DNA from: Botryllus schlosseri
Lineage: Eukaryota
Direction of reading: 5' to 3'
Assembly: GCA_051294905.1 (NCBI GenBank)
Contig: CM119373.1
Coordinates: forward strand, 8,246,001 to 8,310,000
Length of the DNA stretch: 64,000 nucleotides
The notes below the pieces were generated by a model. That model made no database searches. It saw nothing but the letters and a program-made list of their open reading frames with translations, and had not been told where the DNA came from. Positions 38,892 to 56,949 of the stretch are shown in pieces. The translations under genes were made by a program, and so were the position numbers. The first letter of the stretch is position 1; each line of letters starts with the position of its first letter.

Positions 38892-40881
38892 GTCGCCATG
38901 TCTGCTTCGGTATGATCTATCATCACACGGAGCAATCCTTAATTAAGATTTCAAGGCTTCGATAAGCCCGATACCCAAAATTTACCAAGATATCAATTCA
39001 TTAGGGTTGAGTAGGTGTCGAGATAGCGTCGTTGTTCAACTGTGTGGCCAAGTTAAATCTCGATATTGGGTTCATGCGGCCCGCGGCCTCTACGAAATTT
39101 GAAAAGTGGCCCACGACCCGTTTTGAGTTGGCGACACTTGGCATAAGCGGTGTCTTACAAAATCCTAGAAGAGTGCCGCCCTACACGCCGGCGGTTACGG
39201 AATCAAAAATAAGAAATACAAGCCTGGTGTAAATGAAAATTGGATTCGACAAACACCATGATTACCACAAACGACATTAGGGTTGGGTACATCGTAAATG
39301 CCGATAACGCAAGTCTTCTCGCTGAACTTACGCGTAAGCTCTACTCTCGCACGCTGCGCATACACGTATATAATAACATACAGCCACTAAAATTTGACGT
39401 AGTAAGCAAGTAGTGGGGAATCTCGGCAGACTTGGGGCTGCGGGCCACAGTACAATGTAAGACGGAAAACTGTCCGCGGGCCGGGCCGTATGTTGCCAGC
39501 CCCTGGTCTACTCGGTACATGTATTGCTAATTTGACGAATAGAGGGAAAGATTGATGTATGCGATGGACACGGACATATACGTTGAGATTGAAGTGGGGC
39601 CGCTACCTATAGCCGATCTTTACAACCAGGTAAGTCGAATAGTGCTAATTAATTCGATATGAGTGATCAGATTTTAACTAATTTTGTTTGCAGGAATATG
39701 ATGATCTCATTGAGCCATCGTTATCCGATGTGTCCGCTGCTCAGGTCAGCTCCGAAATGTCTTGCTCGGACGAGTCAAGCTATAAATTATTGGAGGATGT
39801 ATCGCAAAGATGATGTGATTAGTTTATTAGCTATTGATAAGCTCAACTGTTAGGTTTATTAGAGATTTTATAAGTTCAATACAACACAACAATACTGATT
39901 TTGTATTAGCTGATTATTTATAGGAAGGTGTGATTTTGTCTGGCGAAACGAGAGAGAAGCTCATGACGCAACAATGCTGTCTGGCGAAACGAGAGTGTAG
40001 CTCAAGAGAAAGAGGTCCAAACAGCATTGTTGCGTCCCAATGCCAACCTCCATAACAATGAGAAATTCGAGGCTGATTGTGGGGGTTCCAGAGCCGCAAG
40101 CGGAATAAAATTTATATTTTTGTCATAAGTGCCGAGTCAGCTTTTGATTGATACCCGTTTTACCAAATTTTATGCTCGGCAAACCGGTCAAAAATTACTG
40201 TCAAATTGCCTGTAGCCAAATGAAAATTGTGACGTGATACAATTTTACTGAGGCGTGAGATTTGCTTGTGTCGACGCCATATAGGACACTATGGTTTCAA
40301 TAGGCCATTTGCAGTACTTCGATCACGTGACTAGATACGCATAGCAACCACAAATTGGTTGGCAAGTTACTTTCTCGCGCACCTGCTTCAGTGCCAAATA
40401 GTAAATATCGCATAGTGTACGGTTGATTTCTGGTTGTAAACGTTTCGGAAATCTGTTGTAGAAGTCCTCAGAGATTCACCTATGCTAGATGTCAATCCTG
40501 TACAAAGCATTCAGACATTTCATCGGCCAAAGAAAGTATATATGTGGAAGACCTTCTAATATAGTCGATGTAAAGAGATTCACAATTAGTTTTCAAACAG
40601 CTTTATTTTCGCGTCCTCACGGCAGCTAGTTCAGATAAGAAGCATGTATTGTGGTGGGTCCACCAAGTGTCCATTTCACCTAGTCGGAGCTAGACACTTG
40701 GCGGCCCTAGAAATAACAGTACCATCACAATAGCAATTATAACAATAACAATCATCACATACACCCCTAATGGGTGGGCTGTCGAACTGCTCCCCCCAAA
40801 AGTAGAGGGAATTACATATTAAATGAAAAAATTCACTCTCACGTGTAACCAAAAACTAACAACAATTATCAAAATAAACAA

Positions 40882-41906
40882 TCATGACTCATAATCCAAC
40901 ATATACCTAGGACGCCTGACAAAACGTTTCGATCTTGTAGCATATACAGTTTCAGGCGCGTCCTGATCATTCACAATATCAAAAATATCATCACCATGAT
41001 CAGAAACATCAGCTATTACTGGTTCAAAAACGCAAACATCACTACTTTCCCCATCGTCACGATCATAAGGCATCAGGTAATCAACATGAGACTTGCGAAT
41101 ATTTTGAGTTCCAACGTTCTGTATACGGTAAACACACTCTGAAATTTGCTCAACAATTACATAGGGTCCTGAACATCCAGAGGACAATTTTCTCTTTTTA
41201 GGAGGATAGAAATACCAACAATAGTCACCCACGGCAAAAGCCAGCGGTCTCACCGCACTATCAAAATCACGTTTCTGCCTCACTGCAGACTTGGATAGAT
41301 GTTCCCGAGCAAAAGTGAAAGCATCTGAACAAGCATCATGAAACCAATTGACATAATCCACATAGCGTTACTGGGGGGCCGACCATACATGATATCAGTA
41401 GTGATATTTCACGACCAGAAACAGGCGATTTGGGGTATAACCAGTCGAATGATGAACTGTTGAGCGATAAGCCATCAAAATATAGGGCAAATGGTCAGCC
41501 CAATCAGACCGAGAATCATCAACAAAACTAGTGAGCAATTGCTGCAGCGTTCTGTTTATACGCTCACAGAGTCCATCCGAACGGGGATGATAGGGGGTGG
41601 TACGAGTCTTCCTAATATCAAAGAGCAAACACATGTGCTGAAAAAGTTCCCCTTCGAATTGTCCCCCTTGGTCAGTATGAATTATTCGTGGGCACCCATA
41701 TTTTGTGAAAAATTGGGACACCAGAATTTCTGCAGTATTTTGAGCAGATTTAACACGCATCGGATACACTTCAACCCATTTCGAAAAGTAATCAGTAAGC
41801 ACCAACATGTGCAAATACCCCACGTCAGTCTCAGGCAATGGGCCAACAAAATCAAGCGACACTCTATCTAAAGGTTCAGCACAAAGCATCTTGCACAAAG
41901 CAGCTT
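40882..41906 (-). pseudogene. Gypsy integrase core and C-terminus
   Basis: RVSLDFVGPLP, LTDYFSKW, IIHTDQGGQFE, TPYHPRSDGLCERINRTL, GPY motif; one frameshift near 41400; HHCC region missing. Confidence 0.9.
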
Positions 41907-43354
41907 GTGTGTTTAGTGATTCAACAGTAGTGGGACTAAAGCACTTCGCAAAGAAAGGACATCCAGAATTTCTGCAAACTGCAAAATATGTTGAATTCAT
42001 CCAAACCATTTGGAATATCATGTCTGTTAAAAGCCCAAGTAAAGGTAAAACTTTCATTACATAGGTTTATTGCTGCAATTTGACTTTTATCTGATGCGAC
42101 AAAATATTCATTTCAGCCGTGCGGAAAAGAAATTCATTTTTCACGCCACTGCAAATTGGTGAGGATCATCCCGGTGTTACCTATTTGAGAAGAGCCATCG
42201 ACATTTTCAAGAATTGGCAAAAGTCGGGCTGTGCTGGTCTCAGCAATGAAACATTCATGGCCTGTATTCAGACAATGGGGGCTGTGCTATCGTTGACGGA
42301 GCATCTGCAAGTAACTCAGAATGTGGAATATTTATTATCCGGGAAAATAATGTCCGACCCAATCGAAGCCCGATTTGGGATGTATCGGCAGAGCAATGGC
42401 GGTAATTTCTTCATGTCTGTGAAGCAATTGCTGATGGCGGAAAAAAAAATTCGGTGTCTAAGCCTGCTGCAGCGGGATGGACTGTCCAGAGCAATTATCA
42501 GTTGTGAACCGGGCGAGGAAGATGCATCAGCAAACCACGAAGATTTCCAGTGGCTTGCTGACTTCATGAAAACTGTCGTCACAAATGATGTGGACGATAC
42601 TGATGCATCTGTTGTAGTCTTTGTTAGTGGATATATTGGTCGCTCAATTTTCCGCCGTAGGCGTTGTGACGACTGCAGAGGCGTGCTCATATCCGGTATT
42701 AATAATGTTCCAGATATTAATGGCTGCATTCCTGAGAGATATAAAACGATTTTTGACATGGCAGATCGTGGAGGACTTGCTGAACCAACTGAAATTTGCT
42801 TTGCCATTACATTATTGGCTGTGCAGTATTTCTCAGCTGTTTCAGCAGATGAAGACACGTTAAAAAAGTTGATGTGCTGTATGAATCAGCGCAACGTTTT
42901 TTTGAATGCAATGCGTTATGTTGTGTCTTCTACATCTCGTTTTCGTCACCTCATGCTTGTCAAATGTAAATCTAGCCATTTGAACTTCAACCTTATTGTG
43001 CAAAGTGCTTTCAATTGTTTTGCAAAAAATCACCTCAAGCGTTTGAATGCCAGACCGATGCTTGAAGAGGCACCGAAGAAAAACTTTCGCAAGATCCGCA
43101 AACTGACTTCGAAGACTACTGCAAAATGCTAAATTGTGTCATATTGACGTCGCCACGACAACTGACTGTGACGTCACCGTGACAACTGACATCCCTATTG
43201 TTATTTATTGTGTTATTTCCTAATAAATATGTACAAAAGACACGTCCTTGATGTTTTGCGAAGTCTTTTGCAGCTGCTTGGTTGCATCTACATAGGCCTA
43301 CTTCAGGGCACCTTGAAAAGAGGTGTCCAATCCCGGAGTTTCAAGATATCCCTG
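41907..43354 (+). mobile_element. P element copy 2, 3' part only
   Basis: Near-identical to 11075-14171 in reverse, without the Kolobok insert; ends in the TIR at 43354; last exon 42119-43132 is open and keeps SDPIEARFG. Confidence 0.93.
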
Positions 43355-44460
43355 GCAACAATTCAAGAAATATTTCACGCGGTAGTTTCGGAGGTTCAAG
43401 CGTGCCATCATAAAGCTCGTCTGCGCAGATTTCGAAAGTTTCCGACAATGGTACGTTAGTAAAAAGACTTTTCACATCAAATGAACTAAGATATACATTG
43501 GACGGATTTAATTTGGCGCGTTTTAATTCGTCTACAAACGTGAACGAGTCGCGAACGCAGTGGTGCGTATACAAGGATCGAACTGGCTCAATGACGGTGT
43601 TAAGCCATTTGGCTAAATTATGTTGTGCCGATCCACACATAGACAATATGGGGCGAAGAGGTACGTTATCTTTATGTGTTTTCGGTAAACCGTACATACG
43701 CGGCCGTTGTGATCCCGTTGGGCGTAGAGACTCGTACAGAATTGAAGGAAGTACTCCATCCTTCTTTAGTTTGAGAAGGCGACGCTGCAGCTTCATTTCT
43801 AACTTGCGCGTGTTATCGTTCATGTCGGCAGGACCCAGGTTGGTGAACTTTGACGAATCTTGAAGAATGGATTCCATTTTCATGTTGTAATCTGCCCGGT
43901 TTAAAATCACAACTCCAGAACCTTTGTCAGGTCTTGTGATGCAAATTTTTTCGTTTGAACGTAAGGATTTGATGGCTTTAAAACAATCCTTGTTCATCAG
44001 AAAATCACCGGCGTCCACTGGGGTGCCACAATACGCATGTGCAAGATCACTGAGCTTAGCTTTCATCGCAGAAAAATATTCCGGAGATAATGGTCTATGG
44101 TGTTGTAGTTGACCAATTAATGCCTCGAAATCGGCGAATATTTCTTCTCTCCTAACGTTGTTGGGAGGCAAACAAAAATCCAATCCATGAGACAATACAA
44201 ATTCTTCGATATCACTGAGTTTATAACTCGAGAGATTTGCTATGATTTTCTTCCCCGTACTTGGCGAATTTCCAAACCGATTTTGAAATAAAACTTTGAG
44301 GTTACGGTCATACTTCCTCTGGTTCTCCTTTTCCTTGCGAGTGTCAATGATACTCAGGTAACGGCAAAAACGCATCAAGTCAAAAAATGACAGGAAATCT
44401 CTGACTTCTTGTTGAAGTGATCGACATTTCTTCCACCAGTGTGGTATAGAAGATTTCTTT
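43355..44460 (-). pseudogene. Penelope-like RT fragment, 5'-truncated and cut by the P element
   Basis: NLSSYKLS...LSHGLDF, RPDKGSGVVILN, MYGLPKTHKDNVPLRPILS, SFDVKSLFTNVP; homologous to 24225-25550. Confidence 0.9.
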
Positions 44461-44464
44461 TCCA

Positions 44465-44916
44465 ACCTTGGGCCTACTTACAGGATCACAACCTAATTCC
44501 CCATTGCTGTCGGCATCAACCTTAGGTGAGTTCACCACAGAAGCCAACATACCTTTTATGTCACCCATGCCACTGGAACTTTTCTTCAAATCCGCTGTTC
44601 ATCAGCTGCAACTTTTCTTCAAATCCCCGAACTTGCGAGTGGAGAGCAGCTACATCCCCATTGACCGAATTCATCAATTCCGCAGCCTGACGCTTCGCAT
44701 CGCTTCGTATGCCATATTCCGCGGAATACCTTCCATAATTTTGTCCAATCTCGCCAAGCTTTCTTTGACTTTTCCATCCACACCGGTACTGGTATCAGCA
44801 GAGTCATCATCCGAATCCAAAATCGTGTCAAGCACTTGGGATCTGTTGCGTGCCTCAAGATAACTCTCCTTTGACGAGGTAATAGTATCGACTTTGTTTT
44901 TTGGCGTGCTCGCCAT
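44465..44916 (-). pseudogene. Probable Gypsy gag N-terminus
   Basis: ATG overlaps the PBS (MASTPKNKVD...); assigned by position only, with in-frame stops. Confidence 0.45.
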
Positions 44917-45304
44917 TGTGGAAGACCTCCTAATATAGTCGATGTAAAGAGATTCACAATTAGTTTTCAGACAGCTTTATTTCCGCGTCCTCAAGGCAGC
45001 CAGTTCAGATAAGAAGCATGCATTGTCGTGGGTCCACCAAGTGTCCATTTCACCTAGTCGAAGCTAGACACCTGGCGGCCCGAGAAATAACAGTACCATC
45101 ACAATAGCAATTATAACAATAACAATCATCACATACACCCCTAATGGGTGGGCTGTCACATATAAAGGCAACAGAGCTTTTTCACAATCTCAAACGGCCC
45201 TTATAATCACTCTGAAACATTTCGTTTTTGATCCGTCTTTTAATCGGAAAAAGTAAAGTATAATTCATAGCGGCAACAGAAATAGCAACGCAATTTGAAC
45301 TCCT

Positions 45305-47681: not shown

Positions 47682-49388
47682 TATAGAGTATGACTGGAGT
47701 GACGACTCGATTGTTCTCCCATTGTTAGCCGGCAGAATGGTCACGGTCAGATGGCTGCACCCAAAATAGGATCGCTCAGTGCTAGTTTCAATGGCGTTCA
47801 AGGCGATTCGTCGTGTATTTCTTGAAGTTGCGTCGGATTTAGTTAGACAGTTCAACATTTAGGTAGCGGTGGCGAGTCGTTATGACTAGTGAACAATACC
47901 GTGTAGCCTATGTTACATTTCTCACGAGATGGATGTGATATTGTTGCTTTGATCCTTTATAGAGTTTGCTACGTATATGAATAAAATGACAGAAGGTATA
48001 GAATATCTGGTTCGTGTGCATTGGCTATTGTGAGATGAATTCATGGAAAGGAAGACTGAAGAATGCTACAAAGTGAACAAGAGGAAAGATCTTGACCTAT
48101 ATCGATATGCAATTCACAATATCGTTGATTGAAAATATGTCCTATATCAACTGCAGAAACTCGAGTATGAATATAACAAATAATTTGTTGCAACTGTCTT
48201 GTAGTCTTATATAATGCCTGTCCGATAACCGCAGAAACTTGAGTATGACTAGAACAAGAGCCTAGTGTAATGTTAGTGTTCTGCTTGAGCTCGACTCACA
48301 GTAGCCAGAGCTTATACTCCTTGGAAGTGTGCAGAATCGCACTTGAAGGGAACTCGTTGTCATTGCCAAGAATACAGGAAGACGTCCGCCGGTCGACATT
48401 AGTAGTAAGCCAATGCACCACGTCAAGGTTTCGGCCAACTCATTGGTTTCCTTTTTTTAGGTAGGGAACCTCAATGTGGATAGGCAGCATTTGCCACAGA
48501 GCGAAAAAATTACCATGCTAACACTACCAGAAACTACATTAGCTTCATTTGCTGCATCTTTTCTTGGTCATGGGTTCCTGGCATACTTTCGTCTAAAGAT
48601 TTTGATCATCATAGGCATAGTTGTATTGGCACCTTTCCCTCCATTTATAGCCTTACGCTGGCATAAGGCATTTACTGAGTAACTGACTTGGCTAATATCT
48701 GGATTCCTGCTGTATCTCATCAAAGACCGCTATTAAAAAGGCAATCGTTAATTCAGGTTAACATTCGTGTCCTTGTTGACAACGTGATCAGTTCTGCACA
48801 AGAACTGGTACAACTCGTCGGCGAGTTGGATTGGAGTATTCGCTGCGAGTATGACTGACTTCGTAGTATTAATAACTGACTGCCAAGTCCAGACACAATA
48901 GATCCCCGATGTGTGTATTACAGAATGGCGTACGATGAATCCAGACTATAGCATAACGTTAAAAATTACGTTGGCAAATACTCTAAAATATGAGATCACA
49001 ATAATGACAGTTAGAATCAAGAACAACAAAGGACCATGTTTACAATGCGGCGACTATGGAAAGACTGAGCATGTGCTACTACACATGCCCTCATGCGGCG
49101 AGGCGGTCATGTGTGACGTTATCATAGATACAGTCTGAAAACCAACTTGACATAGCCGCCCCCGTGGCGAAACATAATTGCAAAAGGCAGTTATCGTTGA
49201 GACACAGGAATAAATGAAGGAATGGAGGTTTTCAGATTATGAAGACAATCGGGGAGTGAAGAATTATACAAACCAGAAACAATGTACAGAAAGCTAATAT
49301 AGCATCAGCAAGCGAAGGCAATGTACAGAATGTGCATCATGAGTAAATGCGATGCAAATTGGCAAGAAGAAAGCATGCAATATGAAAA

Positions 49389-52300
49389 TTATTCCAGTTC
49401 AAGACGACACAATTTGCGGATGTCGCGGCTATAAGTACCAATGGGCGTACGTACGGTAACTTTACGCACCAATCCGTGCTGATCAGGGAAAACCTCCTCA
49501 ACAATAGCCTTGGGCCACTTGCCGCGGGGCGCATTTGAGTCGGACATGAGAACTACATCTCCTACTTTGAAGTTAGGTGTTTGGTCAAGCCACTTGGAGC
49601 GAGATTGCAACAACGGTAGGTACTCTTTTAACCACCTTTCCCAAAAGAGATCGAGTTTGCGCTGGACACAACGCCAATTTTTGGAGTAGTCATCTGCTTT
49701 ACAGAATTTGTGAGTTGGGACAGAGGGGTCAAGCCTTCCGAGAATTATTGAATTGGGAGTCAGACACGGTAAATCGCCTGTGTCATCGGACAGTGGCGTC
49801 AATGGCCTATCGTTTAAAATACGAGCGACTCCATAAAACAGTGCAGATAATGTGTTATCGTGAAATATTGCATTGTGATTCAGAGCATAAAGAACACGTT
49901 TGCACAAGGCTATACCACTCGCTCGACGCAGCCATTGAAGTGCGGGGCGAGACTGGGTGAAAAGTGCCATTGGATGCCTCTGTCGGCTAGGGACGAGGCC
50001 ACTTGCTTTGAGTTTAGATTACCGACAGCCTTCGCAAGTTCTTTTTGCGCACCAACAAAGGTTGTAGCGTTGTCGCTGAAAATGTGGGCTGGCCTGCCCC
50101 GGATGTCACAGAATTTGAAAAATGCCATCAGAAAGGCTGATGTTTCTAGGGATTCGACCACTTCTAAGTGGACAGCACGAGTACATAGGCAGGTGAATAC
50201 GCAGCCGTAGCGCTTGAGCTCGGTGCGATTGCGTCTGCAGGACAACGGACCAAAATAATCAACCATTGTGTAATTGAAAACATTTTTGTGTGGCGTGAGG
50301 CGGTAATGCGGGAGGTCGGCCATGTATTGGGAGCCTAGAGTCGCTTGGCGACATTGACAGAATATACATTTGTTGAGCACTTTGCGAATGGAAGTCTGGC
50401 CTCTCATGATCCAGAATATTTCTCGAATTAGGGACAGAACTTGTAGCGTGCCACAATGGCCATTCGTGACATGGTAGTGACAGATGATCAAGCGAGTGAC
50501 ATGGTGCCCGGAAGGCAATATCATAGGATTCTTTGCATCCTCCGGGAGCTGAGAGCGATTTAGTCGGCCTTTTACACGCATAACCCCATTTGAAACGTAC
50601 GGTATCAATTTAGCCAAAGAATTGGGAACAAGCTTTTTGTTAACGAGAAACTGATCGGTGGCGCGTGCGTTGTCATGAAACGGTTTGGTGGCACCCGGGA
50701 ACGACTCGCTTTGCACGAGCCTAACAATTTCTCTTGTCGCTTCCTCCAGCTCATCGACGGTGAGGAAACCGGTGCGCGGTGCAGGCAGCGGGTCGCCAGA
50801 CGGGCCTTTTGTCTTCTTGCGCAGCACAGAACGTAGTCGTAAGATCCAGGCAGTCGAGCGGACGAGTTTCGTGAAAGAGGAGAAACTGTTCAGGTAGTCG
50901 TTAAGCGATCTCGTTGTAGGTGTTACGTCTATCGAAAACACTGGTTCGATTTTTGTTGCGGAACGGTGAGCTTTGTTGTGTCCAGGCCATGAGTCTTCAG
51001 GCTGGAGCAAGAAGTCGGGCCCCTCGAACCACATTCTTGCGAGCTGCCAACGATGGGGCATTACGCCACGTGAGCCAGTATCTGCTGGATTGTTGGCGGA
51101 GGCAACATGCTGCCATTGCTCGACTCGCGACAGAGCACGAATCTTGAGTAGTCGTTGATGTACAAAAGTGTCGAATCGGGCCGAAGTGCTCCTGATGCTT
51201 TGGAGCACTGAGGTACTGTCGGTCCAGTAGTGAACAGTGTCGATATTGTAGTCAACATCTTTTATAACGTCTCGGGCGAGCTTGATGCAGGTTACGGCAG
51301 CCGTGAGTTCCAGTCTGGGAATGCTGGGAGCATTCTGCGGCACGACCCTGGAGATGCCTCTGACAAATGATATGTGGACGTTGCCGTCAGAGTCCTCGAA
51401 ACGAAAATAGCAACAGGCTGCATAGCCGGATTTACTAGCATCGGCAAAAGCGTGTAGTTGAATGTTCACGGGCGAGAATCCTGGTGGTTTATAACACCTG
51501 GGAAATGAAAGCTTTTCGAGTTCCGGAAGCGAATTGACCCATTTGGTCCACTTCGCACTGAAACTCTCGTCGATCGGTGTGTCCCAATCTAGGTCGAGAC
51601 GAGAAATTTCCTGTAGAAGTGCCCTTGCTGGTAACAGGAACGGGCTCAGGTATCCGAAAGGAGTATAGATCTGAGCGATTTGACTTGCGATGCCTCTGCG
51701 AGTGAAAGGCTTAGGTACGATGTTAGTGCGTGCACGGAGTGTGTCTTCATTCATGTTCCAGATAACACCCAACGTTCGCTCGTTATCTGAATTTGCGAAG
51801 TCGAGATCAACGAGATTGGAAGCGCGGGCTTCTCCGGGAATCCGGGACATAATCGCAGAACTACCGCTGGCAAATTTCGTCAGATTGAATCCGTAATGTG
51901 CGAAAAGCGTTCGCAGTTCTTCGACGATCTTGATAGAGGTCTCGAGATCATCTGATGAATGGAGTATGTCATCGACATACATGTTCCGGAGGATGCAGTC
52001 GAGAGTAGGCTTGGCGGCGTTCGTGCCGTTTTGCAAGACTATCTGTCGTAGGCAGAATTGAGCAACACATGGAGAGGACGTGCTTCCGAATACGTGAGAT
52101 GTCATCTGGTAATCGGTTGCTCTACCATCTAGCTTGCTGTCAGCGAACCAGAGGAATCGCAAGCTATCCGCGTCTTCTGGATAGGTTTGTATTCTTGAGA
52201 ACATCTGAGCGAGGTCTGCAACCCAAGGGTGCCTGCCCATACGGAAACGGCATAGGACCCCGATGAGAGAAGAATTCACGTCAGGGCCACTGAGCAGTTG

Positions 52301-55300
52301 GCTATTTAGACTGGTACCGGAGAATTTGCGGCTTGCGTCGAAGACTATTCGCATCTTTTGTTGCCGGGTGTGAAAATGGACGAGGTAGAACGTTCGCTCA
52401 GAGGAAGGCAGCAATTCTGGCGGAACAACTTGAGCGTACCCTCGAGATAGATACTCGTCGATTTTTTCCTTGTACTTTCGAAAGAACTCGGGATCTTTCG
52501 CGAATTTCAAGCGCTGGGATTCGAGCGATTTCTCAGCGGCTGCTCTGTTGTACGGGAGCTTCACGTCTTTCGTCCGCCACGGAAGGCCTACCTGGAAACG
52601 ACCGTTCAGTATGCGTGCCGTATCTTTCATCAAGGCGAGCGCGCGCTCATCGTCGATCGAATGTTGAGATTCGTAGGGGTCAACCCAAATGTCCGAAAAA
52701 TCAGCGTTACAGCTAGAACACAATGGCAATGTACGCGAATCGAGATGCTTAGAAATGCGTGTATCAACGTGTACGAAATTAATATCGATAAAATTGGCAC
52801 TATTAGGCTCGGCATCGGAGCTCGCCATGGTATAATCTGAGCCCCCAAGACACCAACCAAAGACCGAGAGCTCGGCCCCGGGCAAGCCGTTCTGAGGCTT
52901 GATAACTTCAGTGCTGGGGTAGCGCATTAGGAAATCTTTCCCAATGACCAAGTCGACATCATTTGTGTCGGCAACCGGTATATTAATGTGGCTGAGGTGA
53001 GTGCATTTAGAAATGGTATCAACATTTGGAGAGTGATTGAACACATCAGGAAAGTGGGGAGAGGCAAGCACATCAGGTATATCAATCACCGTGCTCTGAT
53101 CAAGGCCTCGGACGGAAAGAGCCACCACTTCTACCTCCCCCTCGGCGGTGCCCGTAGCTGTCTTGGTTCGACAAGCAATACGATCACCATGTAGATTCAA
53201 TTTTTTGCGCAGGCGCTCTGTGCACAGTATAGAGCCACAGCCTGGATCTAGGAATGCGTTAGAGGTCACTCTAACTTTTGAATCGGGGGAGGTGATTATG
53301 ACCGGTACGACGGCTAAGCGCACAGGATTCACTTTCCCGTTTAGCGAGGATGACATCGTGTTGACGTCAGCGAATATTTTATTTTGGAAACCCCAGTGGA
53401 GTAGGGTGTGATGCGATGAGTTGCAGCCGTCGATGTAGCACTTGCGTTCTGACTTACATGTACGGGGTTCATGCCCGTAATTCAGGCAGGTGGTGCAGAT
53501 CCGTTTTTCTTCCACGCACTTTTTACGCTCATCTGGGGTCTTCTGATGGAAGACGTCGCATTTGTAGATCTGGTGTGTGCCACTGCAGAGATGACAGCGC
53601 GGTGGCGGCGGTCTTTGCGAATTGCTTTGTCGACGTTCACTGGAGGCACCGACGGGGCGCTCAACGGTTGTTGCGTTCACTTTCACTTGCGTGGTGCATC
53701 TTGCGGCTCTGGCGTTCGGCATGTTGGCTACGAGTCTTCCCATGCGAGTTCTCCCGATATCAGCTGCACTCACAACGAAGTCGACGAAGTCGTCAAAGGT
53801 TGGCTCGATGCCGTTTTTCATCGTATCATTGTACTTGTTCGTGAATCTTGTCATAAAGTTTTTGGGGAAGCGCTTTACTATTTTGTCAAAAACGCCTGGC
53901 GCGTTCACTTGCGCCTTTGCTCTAAGTTGTGCAAGGACGTACCTGGCCGTTCTGAGCTCGTCAGATACTTTTTGCAGCGCCCTACTGTCGCTAGGTTCAA
54001 CATGATTATCTTGAGTTAAATTATCAATGAATGCATCAATAACGTAGTTTTCGCGGCCAAATTTATCGTACAGAATTTTGCGGGCATGTGAGTACGCTTC
54101 CTCGTCATGCCGATTAGCACGACAACCAGAAAGTGAAGCCTCCGCATCACCAGTACAAAACGAGATCAATCTATTTAGTTTGGTCCGGGCTGAGTGTCTC
54201 TCACTAGGATGTGCATTTACAGGCTCGAAAGCGGAATCAAATTCATCGATAAAACGGTAGTAATCTCGCGGGCTGCCATCAAAACTTGAGATTGTTATGG
54301 TCTGTAGGTCCATCCCACGTTTCATGGAGCCTAGCATACTGTTCAATGACATGGCACAAGGATCGTTAAGCGAGTTCCCCGAACCGTGCGGTGGAATAGA
54401 AGCGACATAATCCCCATGCGGGCGATAATAACTAGAACCGGTTTGGTCGCGGGAATGAGGACTGTGCCAAGTGTGCTCATATGGCGCGTAATGTCTATCG
54501 GCGCCTGGATCGCGATAGCGAGAGGTGAGATCAGAGTGCCCATGGGGCGCGTAATGACTATAGTCGGCTTGACCGTGGTAATGAGAGGTTGGATAGGTGT
54601 GCGTGTATGGCACGGTATGACTATGGGCGGTTTGCTCGCCATAGCGAGAGGTTGGATCGGTGTGCGCGTACGACACGGTATGACTATCGGCGGTTTCATC
54701 GCGATAACGAGAGTTTGGATCGGCGTGCCCATATGGCGCGTTATGACTATCGGCGGTTCGATCGCGATAACGAGAGGTTGGATCGGCGTGTGCGTACGGC
54801 ACGGTATGACTATCGGCGGTTTGATCGCGATAACAAGAGGTTGGATCGGCGTGTGCGTACGGCACGGTATGACTATCGGCGGTTTGATCGCGATAACAAG
54901 TGGTTGGATCGGCGTGCGCGTATGGCACAGTATGACTATCAGCGGATTGATCACGATAGCGAGAGACGGGATCGTTCTGCCACTGTGGAGTACTTTGCGA
55001 ATACGAGGGAGTTGCTGGCTCCGAGCGCGAATGAACGGGCTGGGAATGTGTGCCTATCTCTCGAGCCTGGCTACCAAGATCATCAGCTGCGAAACTGACG
55101 GACAGACGACTGCTACGGTTAGGGGTTTGTCTTAGATCATGCGCGACTTGAGTACTAGCCAATGCCGTCGACTGATGAGTGTCTGTCAACGATAGGGTTA
55201 CCGCCGGCTCCGTTGCGAGCCTCTGCCCAGCACTACTGGCTGTGGCAGATGCAGGCGTTCCCCAGGTAACGAAACTCGATGTTTGCGTAGTGAGTAAATC

Positions 55301-55963
55301 TAAAGGTTCAGTACTCACAGCACCATTTTCTCCTTCGAGGACAAGTGATCCGACGGAACCGCCGCCGGATTCTTCTTCGGCAATTTCCAAGTTTGAAGTT
55401 AATTCGAGAATCTCCATATTTTCTTCAAGTTCTGCTGCGATGCTAGCTTCTTTGGCTTTTTCTGTAGCTCTTCTTGCTTGTTGTCTGAGTTTTATCTTTT
55501 CGATTGACAGTCTAGCATCGCGTGCTGCGGATGATTTTTTGGAAGATGTGACAGAATGAGGACTCGCAGGTATCTCCGAGGTTCGAGGCTTAATGTAGTC
55601 AAGGGTGACATCGGAAGAAGAGTTTACGTTCTCTTTTCGGTAATCTTGGAAGGCGCGACCAGCCTGACGCTGACCCTGTACGACTGTCAACAACAGTCCT
55701 TGTATCTGCAAGACGCTCTCCTGTAGAGCAGGATTCATTTTAGCTTTTTCGATCAATCCGTAGAAGTCGTCAATGAGTTTACTGCATAGTTCATCTAGTT
55801 CGCAGTTACACTTGATAGCGTTTTCAGTAGACGACGTATTCTGTAAGGCGGAGGAGAAAGCGTCTTTAGCTTTCTCGTAGGCAACTCTGGAACTTTCCAG
55901 GACTGCGTCGATATGCTGCTTGTTCAACTCTTGTTGACCAACGGCTTGTAAGGTTCGATCCAT
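49389..55963 (-). CDS. BEL/Pao Gag-Pol polyprotein (Gag, three Cys/His knuckles, protease, RT, RNase H, integrase); one frameshift near 49915
   Basis: First ATG MDRTLQ; CHLCSGTHQIYKC, CTTCLNYGHEPRTC, CYIDGCNSSHHTLLH; AFLDPGCG; RNMYVDD; LHAFADASKSGY; VDYFGP, SDNATTF; removing 2 nt restores GCVERVIALCKRVL. Confidence 0.95.
54440..54965 (-). repeat. 63-bp coding tandem repeat (21 aa, about 8 copies) in BEL Gag
   Basis: Unit SRYRDQTADSHTVPYAHADPT; GATCGGCGTG recurs at 54781 and 54844. Confidence 0.95.
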
Positions 55964-55982
55964 ATCGAGGTCGGTCAGCACT

Positions 55983-55998
55983 CGTAATTTTTAACTTT
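55983..55998 (-). promoter_or_regulatory. Non-tRNA primer-binding site, complementary to the element's own LTR (56186-56201)
   Basis: Sense strand after the LTR is AAAGTTAAAAATTACG; the LTR sense strand contains CGTAATTTTTAACGTT (15/16 complementary, 13 contiguous). Confidence 0.7.
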
Positions 55999-56949
55999 TG
56001 TCCTTGTTGACAACGTGATCAGTTCTGCACAAGAACTGGTACAACTCGTCGGCGAGTTGGATTGGAGTATTCGCTGCGAGTATGACTGACTTGGTAGTAT
56101 TAATAACTGACTGCCAAGTCCAGACACAATAGATCCCCGATGTGTGTATTACAGAATGGCGTACGATGAATCCAGACTATAGCATAACGTTAAAAATTAC
56201 GTTGGCAAATACTCTAAAATATGAGATCACAATAATGACAGTTAGAATCAAGAACAACAAAGGACCATGTTTACAATGCGGCGACTATGGAAAGACTGAG
56301 CATGTGCTACTACACATGCCCTCATGCGGCGAGGCGGTCATGTGTGACGTTATCATAGATACAGTCTGAAAACCAACTTGACAATTCGTAAATAATATTA
56401 ATGAATGTCAACTGAAGTTACCAAAGATCCAAATGCTGCTTCCATAACACCATTCAAAAGCCGAATTGCTAGCTTGACCAATGATCAATGACCATTTTCT
56501 TGGACCATATTTGTATAGAACTCTGATCTTGGTGGACACTTTTGGCATTCTTGAAATTGGATGTAAATTTCACCGACTTGTTACTAGTGGTAACCAGAGT
56601 GGAACAACATCGTCGGGTGGTTATAATGGTACCTATAACCATGGAAGTATTTCCTGCCAAAAATCTCAACATTTGTAAGAGATATGCTGGAAAATATAAG
56701 AATATTTCAATCTTCTCCGAATTGTTCACCTCTGGCCAGCGGGCCATATCTTTGACACCCCTGCTTTACATTATAGTAAACCCCACAGTGATAGCAGTAG
56801 CAATTGTCAAATTGGTTAAGAAATACCATGGCTTATACAATTCCAACAATAACAAAAAAGCAAAGACTTTCAACAGCATCATGATTGAAACAAGAGGTTT
56901 GGAAGTATAGAAAATGGTGCTATAAGAGCATATTGTTCATTGTTTTTTC

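Follow-up and report, generated by a model that had tools for sequence, protein, structure and literature searches.

A BEL/Pao retrotransposon of Botryllus schlosseri that probably primes reverse transcription from its own trans-spliced RNA

A young BEL/Pao retrotransposon of Botryllus schlosseri probably starts minus-strand DNA synthesis from its own RNA and not from a tRNA. The observed bases of this reading are the lack of a tRNA-type primer-binding site (PBS), a duplex between an LTR segment and the stretch just past U5, the covariation of its two arms, the polarity of the segment, its occurrence in RNA and the trans-splicing of that RNA at its 5' end; the cutting of the RNA and the priming itself are what we infer from them.

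Anatomy of the element and of its primer-binding region

The element lies on the minus strand of the window, i.e., the whole 64,000-nucleotide stretch of contig CM119373.1 that was analysed, and is organised as follows.

48768..56383, minus strand: whole BEL/Pao LTR retrotransposon, 7616 bp, delimited by Pfam domains, LTR pair and target-site duplication
55999..56383, minus strand: 5' LTR, 385 nt, TGT...ACA, with ends set by the CGAAT duplication
48768..49152, minus strand: 3' LTR, identified by its match to the 5' LTR
56384-56388 (5' side) and 48763-48767 (partner), minus strand: target-site duplication CGAAT (5 bp)
49910..55963, minus strand: gag-pol open frame of 2017 codons, with its ATG at 55963
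49389..49970, minus strand: DUF5641 (integrase C-terminal extension), in another frame and overlapping the end of the main ORF
49153..49165, minus strand: polypurine tract region ACGGGGGCGG, then CTA, abutting the 3' LTR

The main frame carries DUF1759, RVT_1, the Pao Peptidase_A17 region and Integrase_H2C2 (Pfam matches PF05380 at 1.3e-42, PF03564, PF17921 and PF18701 at 2.3e-29), and pol is interrupted near its end, since DUF5641 is encoded in another, overlapping frame. A search with the RT region returned 806 matches at 1e-20 or below, all of PF05380 architecture, among them BEL/Pao polyproteins from a wide range of animals, about 40% identical. The element is thus a member of BEL/Pao (Belpaoviridae), because of its Pfam domains, its TG...CA-type LTRs and its 5-bp duplication (the range of the class being 4-6 bp); no Ty3/gypsy-type pol, in many cases combined with a chromodomain integrase, as membership of the Tf1/sushi clade would imply, was found in this Pfam architecture. 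It is also young and nearly intact, as originally described, with LTRs identical at 384 of 385 nt (1 mismatch); the LTR length of 300 nt suggested by a first repeat scan was rejected in favour of 385 nt. Ahead of the 3' LTR, lineage D (see below) has the same arrangement of GGGGGCGG and CTA. Within gag, the frame at 54410-55039 (minus strand) is made of about 10 tandem repeats of 63 nt (21 codons), and repeated peptide motifs are present near the gag N-terminus of more distant lineages too.

The 5' LTR ends in ...AAGGACA and is followed by AAA (55998-55996), GTTAAAAATTACG (55995-55983), AGTGCTGACCGACCTCGAT (19 bases) and the ATG (55963). No TGG is found in this 35-nt leader between LTR end and ATG, and priming by a tRNA 3' end is therefore excluded, which bears out both the sequence and the conclusion of the original prediction. 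During reverse transcription, the stretch from the primer to the RNA 5' end becomes LTR; with the LTR end defined by the target-site duplication, a primer has to anneal its 3' end within a few nucleotides after 55999. The sole candidate primer site in the leader is a 13-mer that can pair with the LTR.

55983..55995, minus strand: PBS, GUUAAAAAUUACG, 3 nt (AAA, 55996-55998) past the LTR end
56189..56201, minus strand: putative self-primer segment, CGUAAUUUUUAAC, perfect 13-nt complement of 55983-55995

The LTR sense strand at 56201-56189 reads CGTAATTTTTAAC and is complementary to GTTAAAAATTACG at 13 of 13 positions, exactly the contiguous pairs initially proposed. Distances are 182 nt between the LTR start and the segment, and 190 nt between the 3' end of the segment and the LTR end. 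This 3' end (56189, ..AAC) faces the PBS base nearest to U5, so that the polarity also fits a self-primer as was first noted. When the next three bases (GTT vs AAA) are added, the match becomes 15/16. This original count is correct for the present copy but overstates the conserved duplex of 13 bp, as the two extra pairs (UU vs AA) are confined to this element and to one near twin, while AACGAT or AACGGT vs TAA is found at these positions in most other lineages. Self-primers have been defined by an LTR complementarity of at least 10 nt starting 0-5 nt after the LTR (PMC6317226), and here 13 nt are complementary at offset 3. A neighbouring LTR element in this window serves as a control and has, one base past its LTR, a PBS of the classical tRNA type, TGGCGAGCACGCC. 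This small element extends over 40543-45157 (minus strand), with LTRs of 241 nt at 40543-40783 and 44917-45157 that are 96% alike and 4374 nt apart.

Covariation of the duplex in tunicate and teleost relatives

Related copies were collected by searching the genome with DNA and with the gag protein, which yielded dozens of them, down to a gag identity of about 32%, and the duplex was compared across at least six lineages, one of them represented by a foreign contig.

Lineage A (this element), 5 copies examined: segment CGTAATTTTTAAC, PBS GTTAAAAATTACG
Lineages B, D and E, gag identity 41-54%: segment CGTATTTTTTAAC, PBS GTTAAAAAATACG
Lineage F, 7 copies, gag identity about 32%: segment CGTATATTTTAAC, PBS GTTAAAATATACG
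Lineage C, gag identity about 36%: an 11-bp version of the duplex, in both arms
Contig L080 (another sample), RT 73% identical: segment CGAATTTTTGAAC, PBS GTTCAAAAATTCG

Double substitutions that restore Watson-Crick pairing occur at four different positions of the helix, and are the compensatory changes in relatives that the original prediction had asked for. One-sided changes in otherwise normal copies mostly result in wobble (G·U) pairs: PBS A>G in two lineages, PBS C>U and segment C>U. The exception is one lineage-F copy (L056) with a one-sided disruptive PBS change, the remaining disruptive changes being found in visibly decayed copies. A TGG PBS, whose presence in most of the family would have argued for ordinary tRNA priming, is absent from all related copies examined. 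Unprompted, RNAalifold predicted exactly this long-range helix from 27 sequences, together with a covarying hairpin in U5, and from a broader set of 22 sequences it kept this helix only, with double changes at 4 of 11 pairs and 3 of 242 cells broken. Judged by this covariation, the pairing between LTR segment and PBS is real and conserved, over 13 bp or, in one lineage, 11 bp.

56042..56059, minus strand: U5 hairpin CAACUCG-CCGA-CGAGUUG predicted by RNAalifold, with double changes in 12, 6 and 2 of the 27 sequences at three pairs
56020..56038, minus strand: second U5 hairpin CAGUUCU-UGUGC-AGAACUG, present in the single-sequence fold

The LTR ends of lineages D, E and C were verified by their own target-site duplications, and the spacer from ...ACA to the duplex measures 5, 4 and 2 nt, respectively, versus 3 nt in this element. 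These lengths of 2-5 nt stay inside the range commonly accepted, 0-5 nt, but their variation would oblige integrase to remove a different number of bases in different lineages. The base following the segment is an invariant G, and the spacer base facing it is an invariant A. Most compensatory changes are single events on deep branches. They could result from primer-to-PBS copying during replication as easily as from selection, a process that itself presupposes self-priming. A splice donor immediately behind the segment (AAC|GU) would have supplied a free 3'-OH and was rejected for lack of conservation, several lineages having AACGAU. A second helix, formed by bases upstream of the segment with bases downstream of the PBS, occurs in fish and in this copy (6 bp, including 2 wobbles); it is not conserved in the other tunicate lineages, and we do not claim it. 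In one lineage-C copy (L073:940-1000), LTR end and PBS are tandemly duplicated (GGACATAGTTAAAAAATAA twice), possibly as the scar of an aberrant strand transfer.

Outside this genome, no match was obtained by searches with the gag N-terminus, and ten contigs of BEL/Pao relatives, chosen from the RT-region matches, were compared. Three teleost elements, all with 100% identical LTRs, have a PBS of 11-12 nt and its complement within the LTR; the last figure given for each is the number of shuffles in which the observed length was attained.

Sarotherodon (cichlid, L088): PBS GTCAGAAAACTG at offset 3 nt, complement CAGTTTTCTGAC 245 nt from the LTR end, shuffles 0/3000
Pungitius (stickleback, L089): PBS GTCGAAAACTG at offset 6 nt, complement CAGTTTTCGAC 248 nt from the LTR end, shuffles 4/3000
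Carassius (goldfish relative, L091): PBS GTCGAAAACTG at offset 3-4 nt, complement CAGTTTTCGAC 251 nt from the LTR end, shuffles 3/2000

The arms of the two fish types differ by a matched, compensatory 1-nt indel, and an adjoining second helix reads GGAGC/GCTCC in one vs GAAGC/GCTTC in the other, so that the fish helix is bipartite, with about 16-17 bp and a bulge of 3-4 nt. The layout is that of the tunicate elements, with unrelated sequences. The putative self-priming layout is thus common to several deep tunicate lineages and to teleost BEL/Pao elements, and its original attribution to one BEL lineage was too narrow. Relatives from sea urchin, hemichordate, coral and clam gave best complements of 7-9 nt, which are not significant, and a TGG right after the LTR is absent from 5 of 6 distant elements, contig L081 having one at +2. 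In the RT tree, the tunicate pair is placed on a long branch and the fish elements group with the clam. In the clam element (Ruditapes, L092), GTCGAACT immediately follows the LTR, and AGTTCGAC, with TTTGCAG in front of it, is situated 97 nt before the LTR end; these arms resemble the fish arms minus two A/T bases, their 8 bp not being significant alone.

Two rival readings can be weighed at this stage. Both arms in the Botryllus element are AT-rich and of low complexity, and the match could as such be fortuitous or a by-product devoid of function. A complement of at least 13 nt to the 20 nt following the LTR is reached, however, in only 3 of 20,000 dinucleotide-preserving shuffles of the LTR, and the pairing is kept down to about 32% gag identity and recurs in the teleost elements with unrelated sequences. 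The compensatory changes contradict a chance origin, whose probability we regard as negligible.

It is also very improbable, albeit a little less so, that a host RNA primes at GUUAAAAAUUACG, be it an internal tRNA fragment as in copia-like elements, a mitochondrial tRNA or another small RNA. Priming by half-tRNAs does exist in Ty1/copia elements (PMC6317226). The 13-mer is found at about 50 non-element sites of the genome, a number that equals the reversed-pattern control, and the comparison covered nuclear sequences, mitochondrial tRNAs lying outside it as the mitochondrial genome is absent from the assembly (no COX1). No tRNA gene was found within the 64-kb window. Such a primer would moreover contain a U5-U6 run, a T-run in DNA, and could therefore not lie inside a nuclear tRNA gene, a T-run being a Pol III terminator. 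Finally, at least four PBS variants, each fitting its own LTR, cannot all fit one host RNA. Priming by the element's own RNA thus remains the preferred reading.

A trans-spliced RNA and the proposed priming mechanism

RNA contigs cover gag, the PBS side and U5, and run from U5 (56032) through the segment as far as 56215; the segment is therefore present in the transcript, one of the checks that the original prediction called for. The match to the genome ends at 56215, and the RNA continues with TTGGTTGTATTA(AG) (contigs X2 and X3, reads X22). The 25-mer GATTGGAGTATTTGGTTGTATTAAG is present at many unrelated loci of the genome and is listed as a chordate spliced-leader consensus (PMC3795323). 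The RNA of the element is trans-spliced to the 25-nt tunicate spliced leader inside the LTR, and an acceptor-like AG is found 9-13 nt upstream of the segment in every lineage.

56214..56215, minus strand: AG acceptor for spliced-leader trans-splicing, from RNA contigs and reads, with the exon starting at 56213
56060..56071, minus strand: U5 stretch AAUACUCCAAUC, exact complement of the first 12 nt of the spliced leader
56145..56150, minus strand: AATACA, candidate poly(A) signal, invariant in all lineages including the foreign contig L080

We know of no report of a trans-spliced LTR-retrotransposon RNA. As the 25-nt leader and 12 nt precede it, the segment is internal, starting at about nt 38 of the mature RNA. 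The original expectation of a segment at the very 5' end of the transcript, as in Tf1, thus has to be given up, the spliced leader being joined at 56215-56214.

A joint between opposite strands, 56071|56215, recurs in two studies and three RNA runs. It is explained by first-strand cDNA at the 5' end of the leader, which can snap back onto its complement in U5, and it therefore indicates that the RNA begins with the leader; a rearranged genomic copy as its source was rejected, no such locus being present in the genome. The U5 stretch complementary to the leader may have a function of its own, its match in other lineages being partial (about 9/12 plus wobble) and not exact. The ends of RNA contigs were discarded as start sites, since they are mostly 31-mer bubbles around variants, and only the spliced-leader junction was used; the raw RNA evidence consists of 22 reads, too few for the mapping of start or poly(A) sites. 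A GU-rich block at 56120-56130 follows AATACA. Together, they are a candidate for a non-canonical poly(A) signal, with which R would extend some 60-70 nt beyond the segment and the cut.

Two observations touch on the origin of this RNA. The locus L036 (G000:C2:12218388) resembles a true leader RNA gene, with the leader, a GTAAGC donor, about 25 nt and a T-run. At about 56225-56245, 25-35 nt upstream of the acceptor, there is a bZIP-like site, with the sequence ATTGTGAT in this element, TGACGTAA in lineage C and TTAACGTAAT in lineage F. This site is possibly a promoter element, and a start just after it would mean a very short outron.

With these data, the following sequence of events can be proposed. 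In the genomic RNA, the segment CGUAAUUUUUAAC (56201-56189), situated in R, pairs with GUUAAAAAUUACG (55995-55983), 3 nt past U5. The LTR RNA between them, some 190 nt in which one or more conserved U5 hairpins lie, is looped out. A cut just 3' of the segment, after ..AAC and before the invariant G that faces the invariant A, would leave a 3'-OH, and the enzyme responsible could be, by analogy with Tf1, the RNase H domain. Reverse transcriptase would extend this 3'-OH across the 3 nt of spacer and across U5 until it returned to the cut, and the strong-stop DNA would then be transferred to the 3' R, whose presumed extent follows from the candidate poly(A) signal; this transfer would need a poly(A) site downstream of the cut. 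The primer piece would be a capped 5' RNA fragment composed of the spliced leader, 12 nt and the 13-nt segment. Since everything upstream of the cut would serve as primer only, copying of the leader would be unnecessary, and it is tempting to speculate that trans-splicing is in this way reconciled with LTR replication.

Alternatively, the duplex could be a structural or regulatory feature of the leader, involved in packaging, dimerisation or translation control, while another RNA primes after displacing the LTR segment. Covariation proves pairing and not priming, the segment is away from the RNA 5' end, the spacer varies in length, and the AU-rich long-range duplex is missing from the single-sequence minimum-energy fold of the leader (z = -1.2, not significant), so that a chaperone would be needed for its formation. 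The paired stretch nevertheless sits exactly where a primer must bind, in a 35-nt leader with neither another candidate PBS nor a TGG, and a purely structural role would leave the element without a primer site. Furthermore, the PBS differs between lineages yet always fits its own LTR, whereas an external primer would be mismatched with most of them. For these reasons, a structural role appears to us unlikely, while being the most serious competitor of self-priming.

Against self-priming itself speak the internal position of the segment in the RNA, unlike the 5'-terminal primer of Tf1, the duplex missing from the single-sequence fold, the varying spacer, and the lack of a significant complement in the sea-urchin, hemichordate and coral relatives. 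Of the original self-priming interpretation, the class of mechanism, the pairing and the covariation have stood, and the 5'-terminal primer and the distribution have not. It is possible, although we hold it to be rather doubtful, that self-priming arose early and characterises an entire branch of BEL/Pao elements, chordate or perhaps broader, in which the internal cut in tunicates frees a capped, leader-bearing primer.

Comparison with known systems and significance

The element resembles Tf1 in that it lacks a tRNA PBS, in that LTR-derived RNA pairs just after U5 with a polarity suited to extension into U5, and in that a structured U5 region with a hairpin separates the two arms; Tf1 has a U5-IR stem-loop, and the hairpin covaries here. 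It differs from Tf1 by its superfamily, by a duplex of 13 bp instead of 11, and by the position of the segment, 12 nt past the trans-splice acceptor and about 37 nt into the mature RNA, whereas in Tf1 the initial ~11 nt of the RNA form the primer. A role of RNase H is, in this comparison, assigned by analogy only. Self-priming has been described or predicted for Tf1/sushi elements, Tcn1 and the plant copia TAR lineage (PMC6317226, PMC5445492, PMC3601003). For the Tf1/sushi group of Ty3/gypsy, it goes back to Lin and Levin (1997) and Butler et al. (2001), as cited in PMC6317226 and PMC5445492, and for the plant Ty1/copia TAR lineage and the Tcn1 chromoviruses it was predicted in silico (Neumann et al., 2019, PMC6317226). 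The present element agrees with TAR and Tcn1 in its LTR complementarity and its lack of a tRNA match, and differs from them in superfamily and hosts, as well as in the additional covariation and RNA data.

Typical BEL/Pao elements are represented by Achilles of the olive fly, which has a tRNA-Tyr PBS (PMC4580426). The protein domain set, the TG...CA LTRs and the 5-bp target-site duplication are shared with them; their 18-nt stretch immediately past the LTR, complementary to the 3' end of a tRNA, has no counterpart in this clade. In Rous sarcoma virus, U5-leader and U5-IR stems flank the PBS and are needed for initiation, according to the work cited in PMC5445492. Here too, a long-range pairing of the 5' leader is found near the PBS, but it covers the PBS itself, in contrast to the retroviral stems that flank a tRNA-bound PBS.

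In agreement with the original prediction, no description of BEL/Pao self-priming was found in the searchable full-text literature, which leaves subscription papers outside, and some BEL/Pao surveys are silent on primer sites. Self-priming is thus most likely new for BEL/Pao, as far as this literature shows, while the class of mechanism is already known: in the cited sources, self-primed reverse transcription is demonstrated in Tf1 only and predicted for Ty3/gypsy relatives and one plant copia lineage. A case backed by covariation in a third superfamily of LTR retrotransposons, and in two chordate subphyla, would point to a recurrent or ancient strategy, and is relevant to the idea that priming by hairpins came before priming by tRNAs (PMC3601003). 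In practice, annotation pipelines that demand a tRNA PBS will misjudge such elements.

Finally, the link with the spliced leader raises the question of how retroelements replicate in hosts that replace the 5' ends of their mRNAs. If self-priming from an internal segment is true, replication would be independent of the RNA 5' end, and the element would tolerate the trans-splicing of its own transcript, by which the 5' R needed in strand transfer would otherwise be destroyed.
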